Notes: a model not told the origin generated them from the sequence alone. DNA of 64,000 nt from Octopus sinensis (GCF_006345805.1 NW_021833277.1:1-64000), one strand, 5' to 3'. Numbered from the stretch's first letter, positions 5,131-57,703 are shown. Numbers and translations: made by a program.

Positions 5131-6250
5131 TCTTTTTTTTTTTTTTTTTTAATATTTAATTCGAGAGGAAAAGGCTCTCTCAAGAACACTTCCAACCGTT
5201 TCCGTCGCGTCTTCCATCACTTGAGGGATGGGTTGGTCCAACTGGAGTCCATTTGCCAATTTGATGGCATATCGCCTCGTCTTTTCGAGCTTAGCGATAA
5301 TGCCATCCTTTCAGCAGTAGGATACCATCCCTCGAACCCGTAGGTAAGCAATGGTTCGACGCACGTTTTATAAACATATAAAAACGTTTCCGGGGAAAGG
5401 TGGAAGTGAATTATGCTCCTGAGAATTTGAGCGCATTTCCTTCTCCTCGAGTCGATGTATCTGAAGTAAGAACCCTTGGATCCAACTTCAACCCCAAGGT
5501 ATTTCAGGTTCTCCGTTACTGTAAACCCATAGAGGTTTCTCGGCGGTTTTCGTTTTGCTCCCTGTTTTGCAATCCAAGTGGCGGTGCACTTTTCTTTTGC
5601 AAGCGTCAGTCCTTTTGATATGCACCATTCTTCCACTCTTGTCACGTATCCTTTTAACTTCCTCCACGAGATGTCTTTTCTCCACGAAGCATCCGTTATT
5701 AATATGTCATCCGCGTAGATCATGAGACGACTGGTAGGATCTTTCGGTTTTGGAATATCAGCAACGTAAATATTAAAAAGCAGGGGGCTCAAGACCGAGC
5801 CTTGAGGTACCCCTCTTTTGAGATCGACAGATTCCGACAAACGGTTTCCGCATCGTATGTATGACCTTCTCATTGATAAATAGCTCTTCAGCCAATTGAC
5901 CGTTTTAGACCCGGGTTTGCTCTTGGCGACACTTTCCAAGAGGCCCAGGTGCCATACGCTGTCAAAAGCTTTTGAGACATCGAGGCAGATAGCAATAGTC
6001 GCTGTATTATTAGCAAGACTAAGCGAGATGACTTTCTCGAGTTCTCCGAAACAATCACCACAGGATCTTTTTCGTCGGAATCCCCACTGCTCTACTGCAA
6101 GTGCACCTGATTCCTCTACGAAGTTCGAAAGTCTTGTGAAGACAATCCGTTCCATAATTTTAGAGACGGAGCATATTAGGCTTATCGGCCTATAGTTCTC
6201 TGCATGGTCCTTTATTTTTCCAGGCTTTGGAATCATACGTACGATTGACT
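5131..6250 (-). mobile_element. 5'-truncated non-LTR retrotransposon, reverse transcriptase (Jockey/I-group-like)
   Basis: NYRPISL, QWGFR, LDVSKAFDSVWH, GVPQGSVLSPLLFNIY, YADD, KYLGV. A19 tract (plus-strand T run 5131-5149) downstream of the ORF. Confidence 0.9.
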
Positions 6251-6839
6251 TTACTATTGCGGTCTTTGTGTTTAAACAAATAAATATAGCCAAATTAAAA
6301 TTTTATGTTATTTTACCGATTTATGTTATTTTACCGTTTCTTTAAGTTTTAATGAAAATTGAAAGAAAATGATTATTGATACCCAAACAAAACACATCTC
6401 TTCAAAATTTTATAAAAACAAATAAAAGAATAATTTTTTGAATTTAAGATTGTTCTAACTCAAATTGCAAATATGTCCTAATGATAAGAGAGGAAACAAA
6501 TTGTTGCAAAATTTTAATTATGTTGATAAAAGTTTTGAAATTACAAATCTAGCCGAGGTGAAAAAACCAAAATGAGGTCATCCGATGAGTCATCAATTAC
6601 GAGTGAAGATACAGAAACTCATCATTATTGATTTTAACAACCACTCGTATTATTTGTTTAGAAATTTCGAATCCCATTTGTTTTACTACGCTTTCGGGAT
6701 TAACAATTTCATTGTCATAATAAATCTTATTGATTCCACAGTTTATATTCTTTAAATCGTGATTACTCAGTAGTGGAGTTATGCAGGATTCAATTCTTGT
6801 TCGAACCTCTCCACCTTTCAGTAATTTATACGTATAAAG

Positions 6840-30989: not shown

Positions 30990-33900
30990 CTACATCCTGT
31001 TCTTCCATGCAGAAATGAAACTAAAATATTAAATAAAAAATCAAACTCCAATCCGATAAAAAGAGCATCATTATTTACAGCAAAACAATTAATCCCCTTG
31101 TCACTAATTTTAAACGAGTCATTGCACTCCATCGACTCCGAATTCCACACTTTGACCACACTATTCCGACACCCACTAACAAACGCATTCTCCAAAAACG
31201 GAATATCGTGGACACACTGAATACTCCTTCCAGAATGTTCCAGAACATTCCTCTAGAAATATAACCATAGACATCACATTGACTATTCTTAACGAATCCC
31301 TCACATCCCATTTACACACACACCCGTCATGACTTACTGAGAATAGAAAACTCCCAATCACATATAGATGGACAATTCTATCATTGTGGGGAGTGCGAAC
31401 AACACATCTGGGGTGAACATCCCCAAAAGTGTCCCCTTTCACATTAAACACCTTATCAAGTTATTCTCCCAAAATATACACAAAGAGTTCGATCTTTCAA
31501 AGCAGCAATGAGATAAAGAACATCCTCAATGACCACCTCAAGCAAAAATACAATCAAAGAGTCGCACATAAATGTATTGGGACGTGCTTCCATTCTAAAA
31601 TAATGACCCAATGTGCAAACCTGGACAAATCCCAGACATTCACAACATTGGAATGAGAAGAATACAGACTTAGTCTATCCACAGATAACACACAACCAAC
31701 GGCGTCGAACAAGCGTTGGGCATTTCATTAAAACTTTGTGCATTCCTGAATACACTTCCATCAGAACTGACACTCAAAATGTAAAAATAACCAAAAAATA
31801 GAAAATTTCTTTTTAGCAGGCTCTCGAATGTCCCACACCATTGAGCAGTACGAAGCCGTCATGACCACCATCCTCAGTTCGGGGGAAAGGTTGATATTCC
31901 TCGTGACGTGGGGGTATCCACTGTAAGTCTGCACTTCACAAAACGCCTCCAAATCCCACAAATTATTCGAACAGTCTGGAATCAGTTATTGAGAGTAACC
32001 CTTGCTAGAACTCACAAGTCTATCCTGACTGGCACTCATTGACACAATTCCCCCACGTGGCCCTCTTATTTCGAACACATTCTCCAGGAATAAGGACTTG
32101 GGTCCGCTCTTTCCTTCAGAAAAGTGGGAAAACCGAGAACTAAATTTGAGGTATGGACACTACCTCTCCATCGCGTCCTTTATTTTCTGTACATCTGAGA
32201 TAGAGAAAGTGTGACTGGCCGACTTGATGAACATGTGATGAGGCACAGGTACAACACTTCCACTCGACGACGTAGCAATAGTACTAAACATGCAACAACA
32301 GTTCAACCACCTGGACAAAGTGTCAATCATCGAGGGCATGGCAGTCAGTCTGTGTTTTCTTGGAATAACTTCCTAAAACTAAACCAAAATACCAACATCT
32401 TGGACGACACCAACTTGAACTGTCCTGCAGTGTGAATCATAAGGTAATACAGTTCATTAGGATTGGTTGTGGAAGGAATGTCTCCGTCAAATTCATCCTC
32501 GGTCTCTGGGAGGAATATTAGTCACTCAACCTTCTTCATCGTCGAAATCTGGATCAGACACGTCATCTCCGAGGAAACTCAAGTCAATATTCAACTTGTC
32601 TTCGTCGTTGGGCACCAAGTCCATCAGATTGCCATACAATTCCGCCCTGAAACTACTCCGTGCGTCCAATTTGGAAATTCTCGCACGAAGTGCCTTATTA
32701 TCCACAATTGTCTTCTCCAACTGCACAATCTGTCTATTAGTCTACAACAATCAGCCTTCTCGATCATGTTCTCGAGGATATTGACCAGAATCGGCTTGAT
32801 ATCCTCAGAATTCTGTAAGTAATCACATAGACTGGAGGACAACTCGTCGGCAGACCCAAATTCATTCTATACTCATAATTCACTCACTCCACCTTTTTGG
32901 ACATGAAATGTGTTATCTTTGACTGACAATCCTTCACGTGACTGCTTATAAACTCAATCGTAGACTCCACCGAGGATATCTTTGTATCCAGCAAATCAGC
33001 CTTATCCTTCTCGTCATAATTCATAACCAACTGTTTTATGAGCAGGGAGACGTGATCTCTTCTCCCTTAATGATACAAGCCGTTTTTTATATGAATTTTG
33101 TTTCTAGAAGGACTAGAATGTTCTCAAACTACCTTAACCCAACTGAACATGTCCTTTTCTATATTGTTGATTGTCACTTGATGTCCACTCATGTTGGAAA
33201 TCCAATCCTCCACTGTTTTTATGTTCTTGTCGACCAATTCCTTCAATATCTTTCTCCTATCTAAGCATAAATAACACAGTCATACTCGATTTAGTCGCCT
33301 CCACACTGATTAGCCTATTCTTCCTTCTCAGACTCTCAATCTAATTAGTTAATCCACCACACTCCAACATCGGCCTGCTTCCTCTTTAGCAACGAGTCTT
33401 TCTGCTCCAACCCAATTTTTAGACTTCTGTTATCAGACAATGTTCGCTGAAACTTCCTTTCGAGTTGATTGACTTCTTTGGTATGACCCACATCCCTCTG
33501 TCGACTCCGAGTGGCTTCCTCTCTCATTTTCTTCATCATATTGACCTTAAATATATTTCACAATACACCTTTAATTTCTTCATCTCCGCCAATTCTTTCT
33601 TCAGCATTTGAAGGTCCCGCTCAGAAGTGGCAGTGATTTTGAGTTGCTGTGTCTTCTCTCGCAGTAATGACTTGTATTTCTGAACACAACTATTTAATTC
33701 TGCGATCTTCTTCTCACATTCCTCCACTCTCTCGTTAGAACGGACATCCTTCTTGTCTATTGAGTATTACAGAGGTTAATTTACTGCTGTTTCGTCTTGA
33801 TATCAAATCACGTTCTTGCTCCAAGGACTTTATTTTGCTGAGCATTGCTCCTATTTTAGTCTCGTAACAAGTCTCCATCTCTTTGCAGCGAATACGGGAG

Positions 33901-35843
33901 GTTTCAATCACTCGAATCAGCCTTTCTTTCGACTCAATCTCCTGTGCCAGACTGACCATTTGACTGGAATCAGAAATGCCGTCCACAGTCCCATCTCTCT
34001 CAATCAACGTGTTATCTTCCTCTCTGCTCTCCATATCCTCACTTTGTCTAATAAATTAACTAATTGGCTTATTATTTACGTATCAGAACACATTCTTGTA
34101 GATTCCTCTCTTTGTCTGCGCACTGTTTGGATGAGTTGATTAATCTATTAATTCATTTAGACCACTCACATCAGTGTCGGGTGTTTTGTCATCATGTTTG
34201 AGTGACTCCAAATCAAATATTTTATTCCTTCACATTACTCAAATGAGATTACTTGAGTGACGAGTTCTCTTCTATTAGTTCTTTTATGATAATATCCGAA
34301 CAACCCATGTCCTCCCCACCACACACTACACTCAAATCACACAACTCACCTGCCAAATATTCTTCCAGCCTATTTTTATCTGAATTGATCTGAATCTCTT
34401 CAAAACGGGAAATATGACGACTAATTTCTAGCTTCTGTTCACTTATTTGCTGGTGAAGCTGCGAATTCTCCATTTCTAGGTCAATCAGTCTCAGTCTCAT
34501 CCCATCCGAATTCTACCAGTCCACCACAAGTCCAAATACCCCACAACTGGCCAACTCCTTCTGCAATTTCAATATTTGTGTCCGAAGAGTCATAATTTCC
34601 CGACTATTGAGATCTTGGTTGACTGTTGCCTTATTTTCTATATTCTTTGCTCTATTTGCATATTCGACTGTCCCAGTTGTCTCAATACAGTCACGGACAG
34701 AGGGGGAAACACACGCCAACATGACAGTCCGACTATTCCCCCCAAGCGAATCCTGCAATATTCGAGTCAGCTTTGAAGTCCGATAAGGCACAAATGTCCC
34801 TGTCTTCATTTTATCAGCCAAAGCTGAGATTACGTTGCCCAATGCAAACTAGAGTCCTCCAAACACACCAAACCAGTCCACAATTTATAGAAATCCCCTC
34901 CTTTGCCCTCTCTCCGGTCGCACCAGTCCTTTTTAGTCGTTCTGACCCAGCAAGATCCACAAAATTAAATTTAGATGTGAGAATCTCCTTGTGTGACTCA
35001 CCCTGATCCAATCAGACTAATTAATCAACTTTTTCCAACTCAATGACTTTCTCTTGGTTAATTAAAATAGAAAATATTGCATGAGAACGAGAAGATTGGT
35101 TGTTCATGTTAGTACTTCCTGTCGTTCTCTGATCACAACCCATTCTGAGTTGGTTTGTCACTTGTTCCAAGTCAGTCACCACCTTCATGGTTGCCCCCAC
35201 CAAATATATTCCTCCCTGGGAATCCTCGTGGATTTTTATTTGACTTTTATTCTACGATATGACCATTTTGGACTACTTTTGTGCCAATGTCCAACAAATC
35301 TCTGATTTCCTCGTTGTAAATCTGCCAATTTGAACTGACCTGACAAACCTCGACAAATTGGATGGACAGTTTGAATTCTGACTCAGAACGTGCTTTAATC
35401 CCCGAAAATAAATGAGAAAGAGCACGAGGAATTATCCCCACTTGGTCTTCCTTCAAATCCACGTTGAATGACGAGCCCATCGAGAAAGTCTTCCCAGAAC
35501 CGGTCTAAAGTAGAAAGGAGTTATAAAACCTGTCCATATGCGAGGATTGTGGCATTGTAGCCTTCGAAGGACCTACAATTAGATAGGGAAATACCCTTCC
35601 ACTAAATTGTGGGCGATTGAGGAATAGATTTGAGATTGGTTGGATTTGACCCCAAAAACGTGGTCGAAAGTGAAATATTTATTGCCTCCCAACAATATTT
35701 GGGAGGTCTCAGGTAGGACTTTAGTGTAGTAGGGATATTCCTCACATAACTCACTCCCGGTGAGAGGACGGACACTGGTGGTGATTGAAATTTATTTACC
35801 GAATGGCCACCTTAACTTTCGAATTCTCGTTCAATTTATTCAT
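30990..35843 (-). CDS. KIF21: Kinesin-4 family KIF21 (motor, coiled coil, WD40)
   Basis: VKVAIR|VRP, AYGQ|[62 protein letters not shown], coiled coils, then WD40 exons (VWDIR, CKWDVR, VKVWN). Many 20-30 nt introns. Continuity across ~32150-32500 not fully resolved. Confidence 0.88.
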
Positions 35844-36185: not shown

Positions 36186-37698
<1,513 letters not shown>

Positions 37699-38733
37699 TT
37701 ACTTTTTTTGTCATTTCATTTTTTGTTGTTTATTTTTTCTAATCTGAAGATTATAGTGATTTGACTTATAATTTGCTTTGAACAAGATAATTTGAAAATA
37801 AAAACACAAATTGAAAATCAATCGAGTTTTATTTATAATTGTCAGAAACCTGGAATGAAGTTAATGTTTCTATTTCTAGACTTTGTGGTTAACTTAGTTG
37901 AGAATCTGGACTCATTATTATTTTTATCATTCTACATAACTTCTTCGGACCCTCCTCAGAGAAGTCGGGATCACCTGATTATTTAGTTCTATGATTTTGG
38001 ACGGTGATCTTGGCTATAATAATACATACTCTTCCGGGGTCCCCAGTTTTTGAAAATTATTTTTAGAGTCGAAATTTTTATCACTTGACTCCAAAACGAA
38101 ATATACAACTGAATCTATTAGTGAGATCCTAATAGTCCGATAGATTTTTTAATAGGTCATTAAAATCAGAATCATAAAAAAAGATTATGGAGGATTTTGG
38201 CAGCGGTCTTACATATAAAAGAAACTAAACCGTCAAGTTGATCAAGTAGAAGAGTTCCTCTTGAGTTGAGGCATTGATTTTTAGCCAAATCGGGCTCTTT
38301 GTTCATATCACCACAGATAAAGACATTACTGAGGGAATGGAGGTTTTGTATTGAAGGGGTCCACCGTAGACAGGATGACCAGGAGGGATGTACATGTTGA
38401 TCAGCCTTCTGGTTGGCGCCTGTAGAGACCGTTATAGCCGTCAGCTCAATTACAGGGTCGTTATCGATTAGTGTGTAAGCTTGTGATGTACAGTTAGAGA
38501 AAGGGATTGATTTCTGATAAGGGTTCAAAGGCCCCCGCCATTACGGAGTTCGGTCTGTCGACGGATGTATGAGTACCCGGGAAATCGGGCAGGCGGTTTT
38601 TGGGCGAGAGCTTCGTTTCCTGCACCAAAGCAATGTCCACGTCGTACTTCTCCATGAAGGAACAGAGTTCAGTGGTCTTGTGGGCGATCCCATTAATGTT
38701 TACTTGCAGGATACGAAGTAGGTTCTTCCTGGC

Positions 38734-38772
38734 GGGTCCAGGGTTTTGTTCGATGTCTCCGGAGAGGAGAAG
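38734..38772 (-). other. 2A-like StopGo ribosomal skipping motif LLLSGDIEQNPGP
   Basis: Matches D(V/I)ExNPGP, placed immediately before the APE domain. Confidence 0.9.
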
Positions 38773-38875
38773 GGCGTTGGGAGTGTAAAAGAGAGGCCTT
38801 GGGAGCAACGGCTTCGCGCCTGCTCTGCTGCCACCGACGTCACGGAAGGTATCCGATTCCGACAGGGGGGGGGTT

Positions 38876-38948
38876 GTGGGTCTTTTGGTAGTTAATTCCA
38901 TGAGAAACTATCATTGCCACCACGAGAAGGTGACCCACATCGACAAAC
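38876..38948 (-). ncRNA. HDV-like (nested double pseudoknot) ribozyme at the LINE 5' end
   Basis: GUUUGUC GAU GUGGGUC ACC UUCUCGU GGU GGCAAU GA UAGUU-UCUCAUGGAAUU-AACUA CCAAAA GACCCAC. Perfect 7-bp P2, 3-bp P3, L3 matching UYCHCG*Y, P1.1 GA, 5-bp P4, C-AAAA J4/2. P1 3' strand is one nt short. Confidence 0.75.
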
Positions 38949-39469
38949 ATCCGCTGCCCTGTTCTCCTCCTGTCCGCAGGAAATTGCTGTCCACTCCCCC
39001 GAGGTCCTTTGGGAGCAACCCGCGAAGGCGCTGTTGGTTCTGCTAGCCGCCGGTCTCATACCCTAATGTGAGACCGGGGTTATGCAACAACAACAACAAT
39101 AAAAGAAAGCTCCGACACACAAAAAACGCTTTTTCACAAAAGTGATGATAATTGTGTGTTTTAAAATGTTCTGTATTAAACGAAATATTGCTCTTCTTAG
39201 GCAATAGTTGTTTTATGTTTCAAATCAACATAAAATTAAAGAAGCATTCTCTCCGCTGATTCCAGGCCTTTCCCAAATTCCTTTCTTGCATAAAATTGAC
39301 GAATTTGGTATAAATATAATTATTTCGCATAATAAACAAAACAAAAACATTTAACAAAATCATAAATTATGAAAAACACATTTTTACACAAATCATTACA
39401 AAACCTTAATTTTAAATAACGAATTTTTATTCTCTTCAAAATTCCGAAAAAACTATATTTATTTATCTT

Positions 39470-46042: not shown

Positions 46043-47511
46043 TTATTATTATTATTAGCACTGTCATAGGAACATAATGTAATTTAAACTAATTAAGTTC
46101 CCACATGTGCCACATATGAGACTATCTTTTCGGTCATAATTTTCCATGATGTGCGGTTGTATGCTATACTCCTGAGAGTATCTAGGTCGTCTCCATTTTT
46201 CAGTTGTCTTTTAACGCGTTGTAGTTCTTTTGAGATTACAATAGGTAATGTATTTCGTGGGCGTCCTCGGGACGCAGATCTTTCGTCCTTTGCGTAATAT
46301 GATTCCATTGCCCAGTTAGCATAAACATCCTGGTCGAGTCTTAGAATGTGGCCCAATAGGCGCCAACGTGCTTCGGTAATGTCCACACTGACGGGTCTGC
46401 TGTTGCAGATATTGTATAGGGTGGAGTTCTTGATTTTCTTTGGCCAGTTGATGCCAATAAGAATTCTTAACTGTCTTCTATGGAATGCATCAAGAGATTT
46501 TGATTCAGACTCAGATATTCCCCATGTTCCTCCGTTGTACAAAAGTATGGGTTTAATAAAAGCATTGTATAATTTGGCACGTAAGGCCGTTCCAACCTCG
46601 CGGTTTCGTAGCCAAGTGGTCCGCAGTTTGTTAAGTGCAACAGTCGATAGCATCTTTCTCCTCATAATGTCTTCACTATCTCCTAAAAGAGTTCCAACTT
46701 TTTTCGAGTTTCGCCATTTTTCGTCTGTTCTATTTGCCTCCCGGTTGATTGTTACATATTCGGTTTTTTCTATGTTCACTTTTAAGAACCATTTTTCCAG
46801 TGCCTGGGGAGCAATGTTCAGCAGTTCTTCGAGTGTCGACTTATCATGAGACAAAAAGTCTACATCGTCGGCATATATCACTTCAGTTATTGAAGTAGTC
46901 TTCACTAGTTTTCTCAGATCTCTTAGTGCCGCTTCAAGATAGACAATGAATAGTACAGGTGATATTGAATCACCTTGGGGCGTTCCAATGCTTGTTTTGA
47001 AAGATCTTGATTGTACGGGTCCGATCTTCACCGTTAACTCGGTGTCTATAAGTAGTGCTCGAACCATTCTGATCGAGTCATTGTCAAGAATAGTTTTGAG
47101 GATCTCCATTAGCTTGTCTCTGCGGATTGTATCAAATGCCCTGCTCATATCAATGCCCATATTGTGGTCGCCATTTTAAATTTCTGAGATATGGCACAGA
47201 TCCATCTATGTCCCCATACTACATCTGCAGTTGATCGCCCAGGCCTGAATCCACTTTGGCTAGCCGACAGATATTCATTAACAGGGTCCTTAATACGTTC
47301 CAGTGTTACGAGCGAGAAGATTTTCCTTATTGTGTTCAAGAGTATGATTGGGCGAATGTTGTTAAGAGGACCTTGCGGCTTGTTGGGTTTTTGGAGAGGA
47401 ATTAGCGTTCCTTTCCCAATAGGCGGTATGGTATTTCCATGGAACATCTCGTTCAGGAGATTTGTGATTATAGTTGAGATCTCCATTGGGGAGTACTTTA
47501 TCAATTCACCG
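46043..47511 (-). mobile_element. 5'-truncated RTE-type LINE with (TAA)n tail and 13-bp TSD
   Basis: TTGACTAATGAAA at 46030-46042 and 47512-47524. RT motifs NIRPIILL, QSGFRPGRS, IDMSRAFD, GTPQGDSISP, YADD. One frameshift near 47150-47160. Confidence 0.92.
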
Positions 47512-47637
47512 TTGACTAATGAAAGAAGAGATAAAAACAATTTTTTTTCTTTTTCAAAGCAAATAACTAAAATTAAATTTTTGTGAATATTTTTTAATCA
47601 AATATTTAAAATAAAATTCCCTTATTCTTGTTGTGGT

Positions 47638-51499: not shown

Positions 51500-52870
51500 C
51501 TAAAATAAAATAAATATATCAATATTCATCAGATGATTCTTGTGGTGCCATCTATTATAGTCACAAAACAAGCTCACTCGAATACAACTGGGACGACCCT
51601 GAGACCTGATATACAAACTATCAACATGTGATGACTGTCCCCACCCAGTCCCATCAACATCTCTGTGTCCTGCATGATACACAGTCCCCGGAACAATCCT
51701 CCCAACTTCAACAAAGTCAACAGACTTGACTGACTTAACCATTCTCACAAGCTTGGAGGGAAAATTCCCGACTTGCAAAGTTCTGAGATTCTGCCCCCTC
51801 CACTCATAGTCATCCCTCCAATCAATCACAGCAATACAGTCACGTGCTGTCACCTTCAGCCCCCTCTCCCACCTGTCCTTTGCCTCAACCACTGGAATAC
51901 ACATCTACACTCAATATACCACTCATTACATCATTTAGTTGTAGAATTAATGATATAAATGAAGGTCTCTTCCTTGAGACCCAAATCCGCTTAAGGATGC
52001 CTTCTAAGGGGAAAGGACAGGTGTCGTTCTTAGGGAGTGTCTTCTCTTTGTGTGCCACCAACAATTCTTGGGGACTGAAGCCTTCCCAGGGGGGTGTTTT
52101 ATGTGCAAATATTTCCCAAACAGTCACTCCAAATGACCACACGTCACCATCTTTGGTTATTCTAGAACATTCTAGAAGTTCTGGGGCTCGCCAGGCTGGG
52201 TTGTTGAGAGAGAAGTCACATGGGAGGTAATAATCGGTTATTTTGACCACATTTACTGGAGAAAGAAGGACTTGGCTGGCAGAGAGAGAGCCATGGATAA
52301 TATTATTGATATGTAGAAAGGCCATTCCACTGGCTATTTGTCTTGAAAAGTGTAGGAGTCTGTTTATTGGGGGGAGAATAGGCTGATCATTCAGAAATTC
52401 TCTAAGGGTCCCCCCTTGGATAAATGTGGTGATTATGAGGAGTGGGGATTCGACTGTTAGGCCTATTAACTGGACTAAATTGGCATGTTCCAGACTAATG
52501 AACATATTTCTGTCCAGTTTTGAGGGTTTTGTGTCAATAGATTTGACTGCCACTCTCATTCCGGCCATAAATCCTTCATGGACAGTCGTGCTCTGTCCAC
52601 TGCCGATGAGGCGTGTGTATGTTATGTCCTCATGTGGCACACAAATGACGGAATCAGCAGATGTGGATTGGTTTATTGCTTTTATTAATATTCGTGCAGA
52701 ATTCTTGTTTATTCCCACTGATTTGATGAGTTTAATACTCAGTTGAGAATGTCTATTGGTATAAGAGGGTGGGTGTACTCGGAGATTTTACTTTTGAGAG
52801 GATAGTAGTGGTGGAGGAGGCCTAATTTGGCCATTGTGTATTTTAGAGTAGATTTGTCAACTGATGACAT
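51500..52870 (-). CDS. ACK/TNK-family kinase-like protein (SAM, kinase, SH3, CRIB-like), predicted pseudokinase
   Basis: SAM-like N-terminus after removing a 25-nt intron; tyrosine-kinase fold with HGS for HRD and DYY for DFG; SH3 EWRGQNLRTLQVGNFP and CRIB-like PGTVYHAGH follow the kinase, as in ACK. Confidence 0.75.
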
Positions 52871-56773: not shown

Positions 56774-57703
56774 TTAAAAAAAAACTTTTCCAGAGTTATG
56801 TCGACGTTGTGGGTCATATCTTGATTGGTAAATTGAATAATCGGTTGTTTCTTGATTATTTTGTAAGGAATTTCGATAGTAGTCAAAACTGGATGCCAGC
56901 TGTATTCCGTTCTCAGGGTTGATTTGAGGAATAAAATTCGACATTTGCTGATATTGGACAAACGCGTTTGGATTGTGAGGGAATTGTCCGTTTTGGAAAC
57001 TAGTTCCAAAGTTGGAATATGCTTGATAGTTAAATGGATTTTGTTGAGAGTACAAATCAGTCAATGGGGGTCTCGTAAAGTTGCCATTTTCAGGGAAATA
57101 ATTTTCACTGATATTCATGCTATGACTGGATATAGGATGTGACACAACTTGATGTGTCATGTCCATAGGAATAAAATGATGGTCCTTTTTTGCCAGATTT
57201 TTGTTTTTTCTACGTGGTCTGTATTTATAGTCCGGGTAGTCTCGCATGTGGATAGTTCGAAGTCTTCTGGACTCTTCGACGAAAGGTTTTTTGTCTTCCT
57301 CGGATAACATCTTCCAATTATTTCCCAATCTTTTTGAAATTTCAGAATTATGCATTTTTGGATTTTCCGAAGACATTTTTTTACGTTGGACTCTCGACCA
57401 GACCATAAAAGAATTCATTGGTCTCTTGATTCTATTTTTTCCATTCGAAATTGGAGCACTTTCAACGTTCTGGTCTTGCTGGTAGTTAACAATCGAAGTT
57501 GATTGAGGATTGTTTTCAAATTTATCGGAGATTGAATTGTATTCCATTTGTGGAGCGGAGTACACTTTTTCCAAGTTATTAGAAACATTGAATTTGTAAT
57601 GAGAATTATAATTTTCGTGGTATTTCTTTGATAATAAATTACCCGTTGAATCATTCTGATTGTATTCCAATTGTTGAATAGACATCAATTTATGCTGTTC
57701 CAT
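56774..57703 (-). CDS. SoxB: SoxB HMG-box transcription factor
   Basis: [14 protein letters not shown]...[15 protein letters not shown]...[23 protein letters not shown]; a single 930-nt ORF. Confidence 0.93.

Follow-up and report, generated by a model that had tools for sequence, protein, structure and literature searches.

An HDV-like ribozyme candidate at the head of a decayed 2A-bearing LINE on a probable dicyemid contig of the Octopus sinensis assembly

HDV-like ribozymes at the 5' ends of LINEs have been known since 2010-2011, so that a further element headed by such an RNA is in itself no surprise. Eickbush & Eickbush in 2010 and Ruminski et al. in 2011 reportedly described them at the 5' ends of R2, R4, R6, SART, Baggins and RTE elements. 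The R2-type ribozyme has been suggested to favour cap-independent initiation of translation. R2 is site-specific and has an endonuclease of a different type, and R2, R4, R6, SART, Baggins and RTE elements are not known to carry a 2A peptide. In R2-type elements the ribozyme processes a co-transcript at the first nucleotide of the element, and the ORF is open to the 5' end, a conserved AUG being missing in some of them. The same processing is proposed here for a family of LINEs in which the frame is likewise open to the 5' end and some members likewise lack a conserved AUG; unlike R2-type elements, the element studied here has as its tail a (CAA)n microsatellite that follows a 3' hairpin. The evolution of R2 is treated in PMC3774820.

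The predicted design of the present family is closest to that of L1Tc, which combines a ribozyme with a 2A peptide, and to that of drz-Spur-3. In L1Tc the first 77 nt contain an HDV-like ribozyme (PMC3185411) and the ORF contains a 2A sequence in its N-terminal region (PMC3708506). In L1Tc of Trypanosoma cruzi and in the ingi clade (PMC3185411, PMC3383444, PMC4035085), the ribozyme, termed L1TcRz or Pr77, also occupies ~77 nt at the 5' end of a single-ORF APE-type LINE, and its cleavage 5' of +1 is the one proposed here. In contrast to L1Tc, the hosts of the present family are animals or animal-associated eukaryotes, represented by a dicyemid-like contig and metagenome contigs, many members have a PHD/zinc-finger segment between 2A and the AP endonuclease (APE), and the reading frame runs through the ribozyme.

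Drz-Spur-3 is an HDV-like ribozyme of the sea urchin, reportedly described by Webb et al. in 2009. Rebuilt from the primers given in PMC5984629, it has a 6-bp P1 starting with G, a J1/2 of GA, a 3-bp P3, a 7-bp P2 (GUGAGAA/UUCUCAC), the L3 sequence UCCCCGU, a P1.1 of GG and a J4/2 of CCAA, which is nearly the layout of the family described below. Sea urchins have 2A-bearing LINEs, the STR elements (PMC3708506). Published 2A-bearing LINEs belong to the Rex1, Crack, L2, L2A, CR1 and Ingi clades (PMC3708506), and the placement of 2A in LINEs has been explained as translational down-regulation (PMC3894237). Ribozymes are unmentioned in this literature on 2A in LINEs (PMC3708506, PMC3894237), and 2A is not discussed in the trypanosome ribozyme papers.

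The RNA at 38876-38948 and the insertion that carries it

The stretch of DNA that was analysed, here called the window, is 64,000 nt long and, as located by an exact look-up of its SOX-type ORF, comprises positions 1-64000 of contig VCDQ01008871.1 of the Octopus sinensis assembly GCA_006345805.1. The ribozyme candidate, an HDV-like double-pseudoknot RNA in a fossil LINE copy, was assigned with covariance models and a structural alignment to positions 38876-38948 of the minus strand, with 38948 as the predicted G+1. Read from this nucleotide, the 5' strand of P1, GUUUGUC (38942-38948), is followed by J1/2, GA(U), and by the 5' strand of P2, UGUGGGUC or (U)GUGGGUC (38932-38939), whose partner, GACCCACA or GACCCAC(A), lies at 38875-38882. 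P3 (38919-38931) consists of ACC (38931-38929) and GGU (38921-38919), and these 3 bp close the 7-nt loop L3, UUCUCGU (38922-38928). The 3' strand of P1, GGCAAU (38918-38913), and P1.1, GA (38912-38911), together span 38911-38918 and lead into the P4 hairpin (38889-38910), in which UAGUU (38910-38906) pairs with AACUA (38893-38889) around the 12-nt loop UCUCAUGGAAUU, where the ATG of the ORF is located (38901-38899). J4/2, CCAAAA (38883-38888), connects P4 with the 3' strand of P2. The HDV order P1-P2-P3-L3-P3'-P1'-P1.1-P4-J4/2-P2' is complete at 38948-38875, and the sequence and all of the segments named in the initial annotation, that is, P1, P2, P3, L3, P1.1, P4 and J4/2, were recovered on the minus strand.

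HDV-like ribozymes have a P1 of 6-7 continuous bp from the cleavage site, usually with G+1 in a G.U or G-C pair. Here the strands of P1 are unequal, with 7 nt opposite 6; G+1 (38948) is able to pair with U38913, and one U is left unpaired. The unpaired base of this copy sits beside the predicted cleavage site. P1.1, GA, is able to pair with the U-C of L3. Judged by sequence alone, J4/2 fits the C-N-R-A rule, with a C followed by purines. The candidate catalytic C had been placed at 38887; a candidate C is indeed present in J4/2, at 38887 or 38888. Directly 3' of the ribozyme the minus strand has a run of nine C (38865-38873, AACCCCCCCCCUGUC). Indels arise readily in homopolymers of this kind, and the frame of the leader could therefore shift between copies.

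What remains of the coding region is an ORF of 135 aa (38494-38901, minus strand), recognised by translation and by comparison with 296 relatives, which comprises a leader, a 2A peptide and the first part of an AP endonuclease. The 2A 'StopGo' motif read from the translation, LLLSGDIEQNPGP (38734-38772, minus strand), fits D(V/I)ExNPGP after a hydrophobic/helical tract and has the letters of a textbook 2A. The APE remnant (38225-38733, minus strand) is interrupted by frameshifts and stops and was identified on stitched frames as Pfam Exo_endo_phos (2e-7). Its homology stops at 38225, at the left target-site duplication (TSD), and the copy has no RT.

On the other side of G+1 lies a LINE 3' UTR fragment in the opposite orientation (38950-39084, plus strand). 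It is GC-richer and is part of the 150-nt 3' end, which includes a hairpin as well as a tail: the hairpin (39050-39077) is a perfect 9-bp pairing of CCGGTCTCA (39050-39058) with TGAGACCGG (39069-39077), and the tail is a (CAA)5 microsatellite (39085-39099), also on the plus strand. The exact 10-mer ATAAAAGAAA occurs at 38215-38224 and again at 39099-39108 and forms the left and right TSD; random window pairs shared a 10-mer in 77 of 20000 trials (~0.4%). The copy is composed of a 724-nt inverted 5' piece (element nucleotides 1 to ~724) and a 150-nt direct 3' piece within one TSD pair. As had been claimed initially, G+1 coincides with the inversion junction to the 3' end (38948/38949), inside the single TSD pair; the 3' fragment has no independently defined start, so that the junction is known only within 1-2 nt. 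When the 3' fragment was compared with all loci, microsatellite matches alone were obtained. An 11-nt match, GTTGCTCCCAA, between the leader (38799-38809) and the antisense of the 3' fragment (39009-39019), through which the RNA could pair its 5' end with its 3' end, is no better than chance (E of ~4) and was rejected.

For human L1, 5' inversions due to twin priming were reportedly described by Ostertag & Kazazian in 2001. In these, one TSD pair surrounds an inverted 5' portion and a direct 3' portion with tail, and the same holds for the window copy. In contrast to human L1, the portions are here far apart and several kb are missing, the two cDNA pieces being separated by ~3-4 kb in the element, a wider spacing than that of classic twin priming, and the inverted piece extends as far as the RNA's 5' end. 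The window copy would have arisen in one event of the twin-priming type: a first cDNA would have covered the last ~150 nt and the (CAA)n tail, whereas a second cDNA, primed in the RNA ~724 nt from its 5' end, would have run to that end, and both would then have been joined head to head. If so joined, the junction 38948/38949 would record the 5' terminus of the template RNA, which is the predicted G+1.

The element is flanked by a gene for a proteasome Rpt2-like ATPase (plus strand) that ends at ~37680. The gaps between its exons measure 25 nt (36904-36928), 26 nt (37184-37209) and 27 nt (37408-37434), and those of 25 and 27 nt run GT..AG. Introns this short are a hallmark of dicyemid mesozoans, which are parasites of the octopus kidney. 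Gene density and mini-introns indicate that the contig is probably DNA of a dicyemid parasite in the assembly of its host; the mesozoan-type animal of the initial annotation is a plausible source in view of the two GT..AG introns. Host genes on the minus strand are a flanking kinesin motor (~33000-35500), a tyrosine/serine-threonine kinase domain (51888-52787) and a SOX/HMG-box protein (56777-57703); a protein identical to the SOX-like one was seen on two more contigs of the same assembly. Two LINE fragments with RT, both on the minus strand (5220-6302, Pfam RVT_1 8e-39; 46096-47597, Pfam RVT_1 3e-20), resemble the element neither in nucleotide sequence nor in APE, and there is no ribozyme match beside them. 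Other copies of the element within the 64-kb window were found neither by blastn nor by tblastn.

Shape, relatives and covariation

The fold proposed initially, with its imperfect P1, would not stand by itself. Neither at gathering scores nor, in a scan of 400 nt, at E <= 10 did Rfam yield an HDV-type family in the window. L002 and L003, which are clean relatives, likewise lack an HDV-type match at E <= 10, which makes the negative Rfam result uninformative for this lineage. The nested fold of minimum free energy is ordinary (z = -1.06), keeps P2 only and does not inform on a pseudoknot. HDV descriptors, suggested at the outset, were run in forms of increasing looseness; the loose form gave ~8 matches in the window (34% GC) and 5 on the antisense strands of control loci. 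The strict form misses members with bulges. Descriptor counts were dropped as a significance test; the loose form floods AT-rich DNA with false matches. Searches by nhmmer with single ribozyme sequences revealed no cross-matches, and a pattern scan of viral contigs for the core of the window RNA gave 0 matches.

The relatives were obtained through the protein. A word-indexed protein search with the 135-aa ORF gave no matches, and an exact look-up of the ORF among called genes gave no record and hence no allelic or empty site, whereas an exhaustive protein search with the ORF identified the 296 relatives, and a 2A-like NPGP-type motif is present in 114 of the best 150 of these. A Trypanosoma vivax endonuclease/RT is among the matches of the APE profile with 29% identity, a value that does not place the element in the Ingi/Vingi clade given in the initial annotation; such a placement would call for a phylogeny of the RT domain, which this copy lacks. 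The anchor for the next scan consisted of P3, L3 and P1 only; it was applied to the contigs of further relatives and to 62 metagenome loci that a 2A+APE alignment had retrieved. Complete HDV-like folds, lying in sense orientation at the ORF start or across it, were present in L002, L003, L004, L005, L010, L018, L019, L020, L023 and L029; with L001 and with L024 and L043, which were found by a covariance model, 13 other loci share the architecture in order and position. Most of the 62 metagenome loci have no such RNA, and these may be 5'-truncated or may belong to other lineages.

Several loci stand apart. L007, L012 and L038/L041 have P1/P2-like pairings with a non-canonical P3/L3 or P2 and were left out. 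L007, the metagenome relative closest to the protein of the window, contains at 64-140 a perfect 7-bp P1 (GGGAGUG/CACUCCC) interleaved with a P2 of ~10 bp, and a J4/2 of CUAAA. Its P3/L3 segment is replaced by a tandem duplication of CAGCAC, so that it represents a broken or a variant ribozyme. The AT-rich 2A-LINE loci L021 (~500-560) and L027 (~150-210) have in common the upstream motif GCAGAUUGGRACUUUCCCWGGRAAU, without an HDV-like fold; they may have a 5' leader of another kind.

One relative, P0015, is an annotated Octopus sinensis protein of the same assembly, encoded by L001, a paralogous element on the 509-kb contig VCDQ01001009.1, and its N-terminus, MWFTFSGG, is the translated ribozyme-like RNA. 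Window and L001 are identical in 65% of the nucleotides of the ribozyme, 44% of the leader and 58% of 2A/APE, the ribozyme being conserved best. Compensatory changes in L001 replace a G-C pair of P2 by U-A and two U-A pairs of P1 by C-G and G-C. If the L001 contig is host DNA, one LINE lineage would be common to host and parasite.

The comparison also bears on P1, which has 6 bp in L002-L005, L010, L023 and L029, all with a 2-bp P1.1, and 7 bp in L018 and L043. L001 displays the same 7-versus-6 asymmetry at the same place as the window copy (G[C]GCGUC versus GGCGCC), and the asymmetry may therefore be a trait of a sub-lineage instead of damage private to the window copy. In the window it may reflect an A lacking from the 3' strand or one U too many in the 5' strand. 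The initial annotation described P1 as one A short of 7 bp and the copy as possibly impaired; the asymmetry stands and an impairment is probable, but the missing A is one reading only.

Covariance models were derived from nine relatives in 'core' versions from which the variable loops had been removed, and the window and L001 were left out. Model R2 comprised P2, P3 and P4, and model R1 comprised P1, P3 and P4. With model R2, the best match on both strands of the 64-kb window was obtained at 38878-38944 on the minus strand, with 27.5 bits and an E of 5e-5 that is rough, as are all E-values from the shortened calibration used; the robust figure is the gap of 17 bits to the runner-up (10.4 bits) over the 128 kb of both strands. 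The native training members themselves score 17.8-36.5 bits with this model. With model R1 the top match in the window was the same site, at 14.8 bits and an E of 0.33, which is not significant alone. In 176 kb of other loci, model R2 yielded weak matches only, two of which, L024 and L043, are further members; L001, in which L3 is degenerate (UUUUCU), was not detected by model R2.

A structural alignment, A4, was made by hand for 11 members, the window and 10 relatives, with N padding so that MAFFT kept the columns; it was used instead of the MAFFT alignment of raw ribozyme sequences, which was structurally wrong. Standard pairs occupy 97.3% of the cells of A4 (shuffle mean 56.5%), 24 of 27 pairs have changed on both sides (shuffle mean 16.7), and the covariation score is 0.964 (shuffle mean 0.231, with 0 of 500 shuffles reaching 0.964, and at most 0.157 with slid partners); since A4 was fitted to the structure, the pair counts of P1-P4 are partly circular and biased towards that structure, and the leave-out covariance models are less circular. 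P1.1, which was part of no search descriptor, is paired in 77% of the cells of A4, with 4 to 5 pair types. The family consensus of L3 is U-N-N-N-C-G-N, the U, C and G of which are invariant in A4. J4/2 reads CAAAU, CGAAU, CGAA, CAAGA or CCAA in the family, with a literal CGAA in L018, L020 and L043, and G+1 is often part of a G.U pair.

The position of the RNA within the elements was examined at their 5' ends. In L018 and L019, two copies of one family, similarity is lost upstream exactly at the P1 base, and in L003, L020 and L043 microsatellite tails abut +1. In L043 (290-349) a hairpin-capable-looking stretch followed by (CAA)7 lies directly before the G+1 of the ribozyme, in the same design as the 3' end in the window. 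Either a head-to-tail tandem or an insertion into an existing tail accounts for this arrangement; in arrays of the L043 type, the ribozyme would separate the units. The element ends of L018, L019, L003, L020, L043 and the window coincide with the P1 base, to within 1-2 nt, and they support the assignment of +1 of the ribozyme to nucleotide 1 of the element. With covariation present among the 11 aligned members, and with the relatives, the structural alignment and model R2 in agreement, the proposal of an HDV-like fold at the 5' end of a LINE is supported. It is homology, not shape alone, that makes the predicted HDV-like RNA at 38876-38948 more than a product of chance.

The open frame, its start codons and 2A

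The frame of 2A is open from +1 to 2A in 10 of 12 members, compared with 7 of 24 other frames (Fisher p = 0.003), and in 12 of 14 when L019 and L043 are added. Only the window and L004 depart from this, and both are visibly decayed. The 2A is encoded 56-99 codons downstream of +1. Given the frame that is open from +1 in 12 of 14 members, the ribozyme would normally be translated, sometimes without any AUG, which suggests that the 2A removes a leader encoded by the ribozyme.

The start codons vary in position. An in-frame AUG just after the 5' strand of P1 (codon 3-4) is found in 5 of 12 members (the window, L001, L005, L020 and L029), and 4 of the 12 have no AUG before 2A. In L003 the AUG is downstream of the ribozyme, and L023 is the only relative in which the first in-frame AUG lies inside P4. 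The early AUG of the window is located at the J1/2-P2 boundary (38938-38940, minus strand) in the frame of the ORF, from which it is cut off by two adjacent stops, UGA UAG (38913-38908); in L001, L005, L020 and L029 the corresponding AUG either begins the ORF or is contained in it. The placement of the ORF ATG in the P4 loop by the initial annotation is correct for the window copy; among the 12 members it is not conserved.

Proposed function, alternatives and significance

We consider it likely that the 73 nt represent a decayed HDV-like self-cleaving ribozyme heading a family of single-ORF 2A-APE LINEs, in a copy generated by twin priming; its catalysis is predicted from the fold and the sequence. 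The ribozyme would form the first 70-100 nt of the element, and the polyprotein would consist, in this order, of a short leader, the 2A peptide and the AP endonuclease. A live element would be transcribed, often within a longer transcript or a tandem array, and the ribozyme would cut immediately 5' of P1, as expected from the fold, and thereby create the 5' end of the element; HDV-like ribozymes cleave at this place with formation of a 5'-OH and a 2',3'-cyclic phosphate. Ribosomes would translate through the ribozyme sequence, and the 2A, 56-99 codons downstream, would free the endonuclease/RT from whatever N-terminal peptide precedes it. The window copy itself is dead: it lacks RT, its endonuclease is frameshifted, its leader contains stops and a base of P1 is unpaired. 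Its RNA is probably inactive or impaired, with no function at this locus.

The descriptor counts in the window and on the antisense control strands, the unremarkable nested fold and the imperfect P1 are what would be expected of a chance HDV-like fold in AT-rich DNA beside a LINE fragment. Such an origin is nevertheless very unlikely, given the 17 bits by which the leave-out model favours the site over the rest of the 128 kb, the placement with respect to the 2A-APE ORF, which is shared by 13 other loci, and the 65% identity with the L001 RNA that includes compensatory changes in P1 and P2. We also regard as quite improbable the proposal made initially that translation starts at the AUG of the P4 loop and that folding of the ribozyme gates initiation. 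It agrees with the first usable in-frame AUG of the window copy and with the first in-frame AUG of L023, both inside P4, but not with the variable position of the AUG in the other members, in which it follows P1, is missing before 2A or, in L003, lies downstream of the ribozyme. Moreover, the earlier AUG of the window in the same frame is blocked only by the two stops, in a copy with other disabling mutations.

A different function of the RNA has to be weighed as well. The element might have a conserved structured 5' leader with another job, such as a Pr77-like internal promoter or an IRES-like entry site, in which the resemblance to HDV is incidental. The same 77 nt of L1Tc double as a promoter (PMC3383444), and the RNA of the present family lies inside the reading frame, with an AUG within it in several members; its catalysis is read from the sequence, and the HDV models of Rfam do not match it. 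Arguing against a leader of this sort are the conserved unpaired letters, which are those needed by HDV chemistry (the U..CG of L3 and the C followed by purines of J4/2), the frequent G.U pair of G+1, the covariation of the 2-bp P1.1 and the coincidence of the 5' ends of the elements with the P1 base. In addition, drz-Spur-3, which has the same layout, is treated as an active self-cleaving ribozyme in PMC5984629. An incidental resemblance is for these reasons unlikely, and a dual role of the RNA as leader and ribozyme is possible.

The self-cleaving ribozyme at the head of a 2A-APE LINE, which is the explanation we prefer, has consequences beyond this copy. The curated models of Rfam miss the lineage; the model made here recovers members in contigs of animals and of metagenomes. 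The inverted insertion is a natural record of the 5' end of the template RNA, and the parasite-like contig matters for users of the Octopus sinensis assembly. The co-occurrence of ribozyme and 2A connects two bodies of literature between which there are no citations and provides a testable explanation for the position of 2A. Tentatively, and with somewhat less than even confidence, we propose that ribozyme and 2A constitute a single functional module, shared by animal LINEs of a widespread group, in which the 2A would discard the arbitrary N-terminal peptide encoded by the ribozyme. Translation could then initiate at an AUG directly following P1, at a codon other than AUG or, when the co-transcript is left uncleaved, in a host frame upstream. 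If this proposal is true, the endonuclease/RT would always start at the proline of 2A, and the module would explain why 2A is found 40-80 residues from the N-terminus in single-ORF LINEs of several clades.
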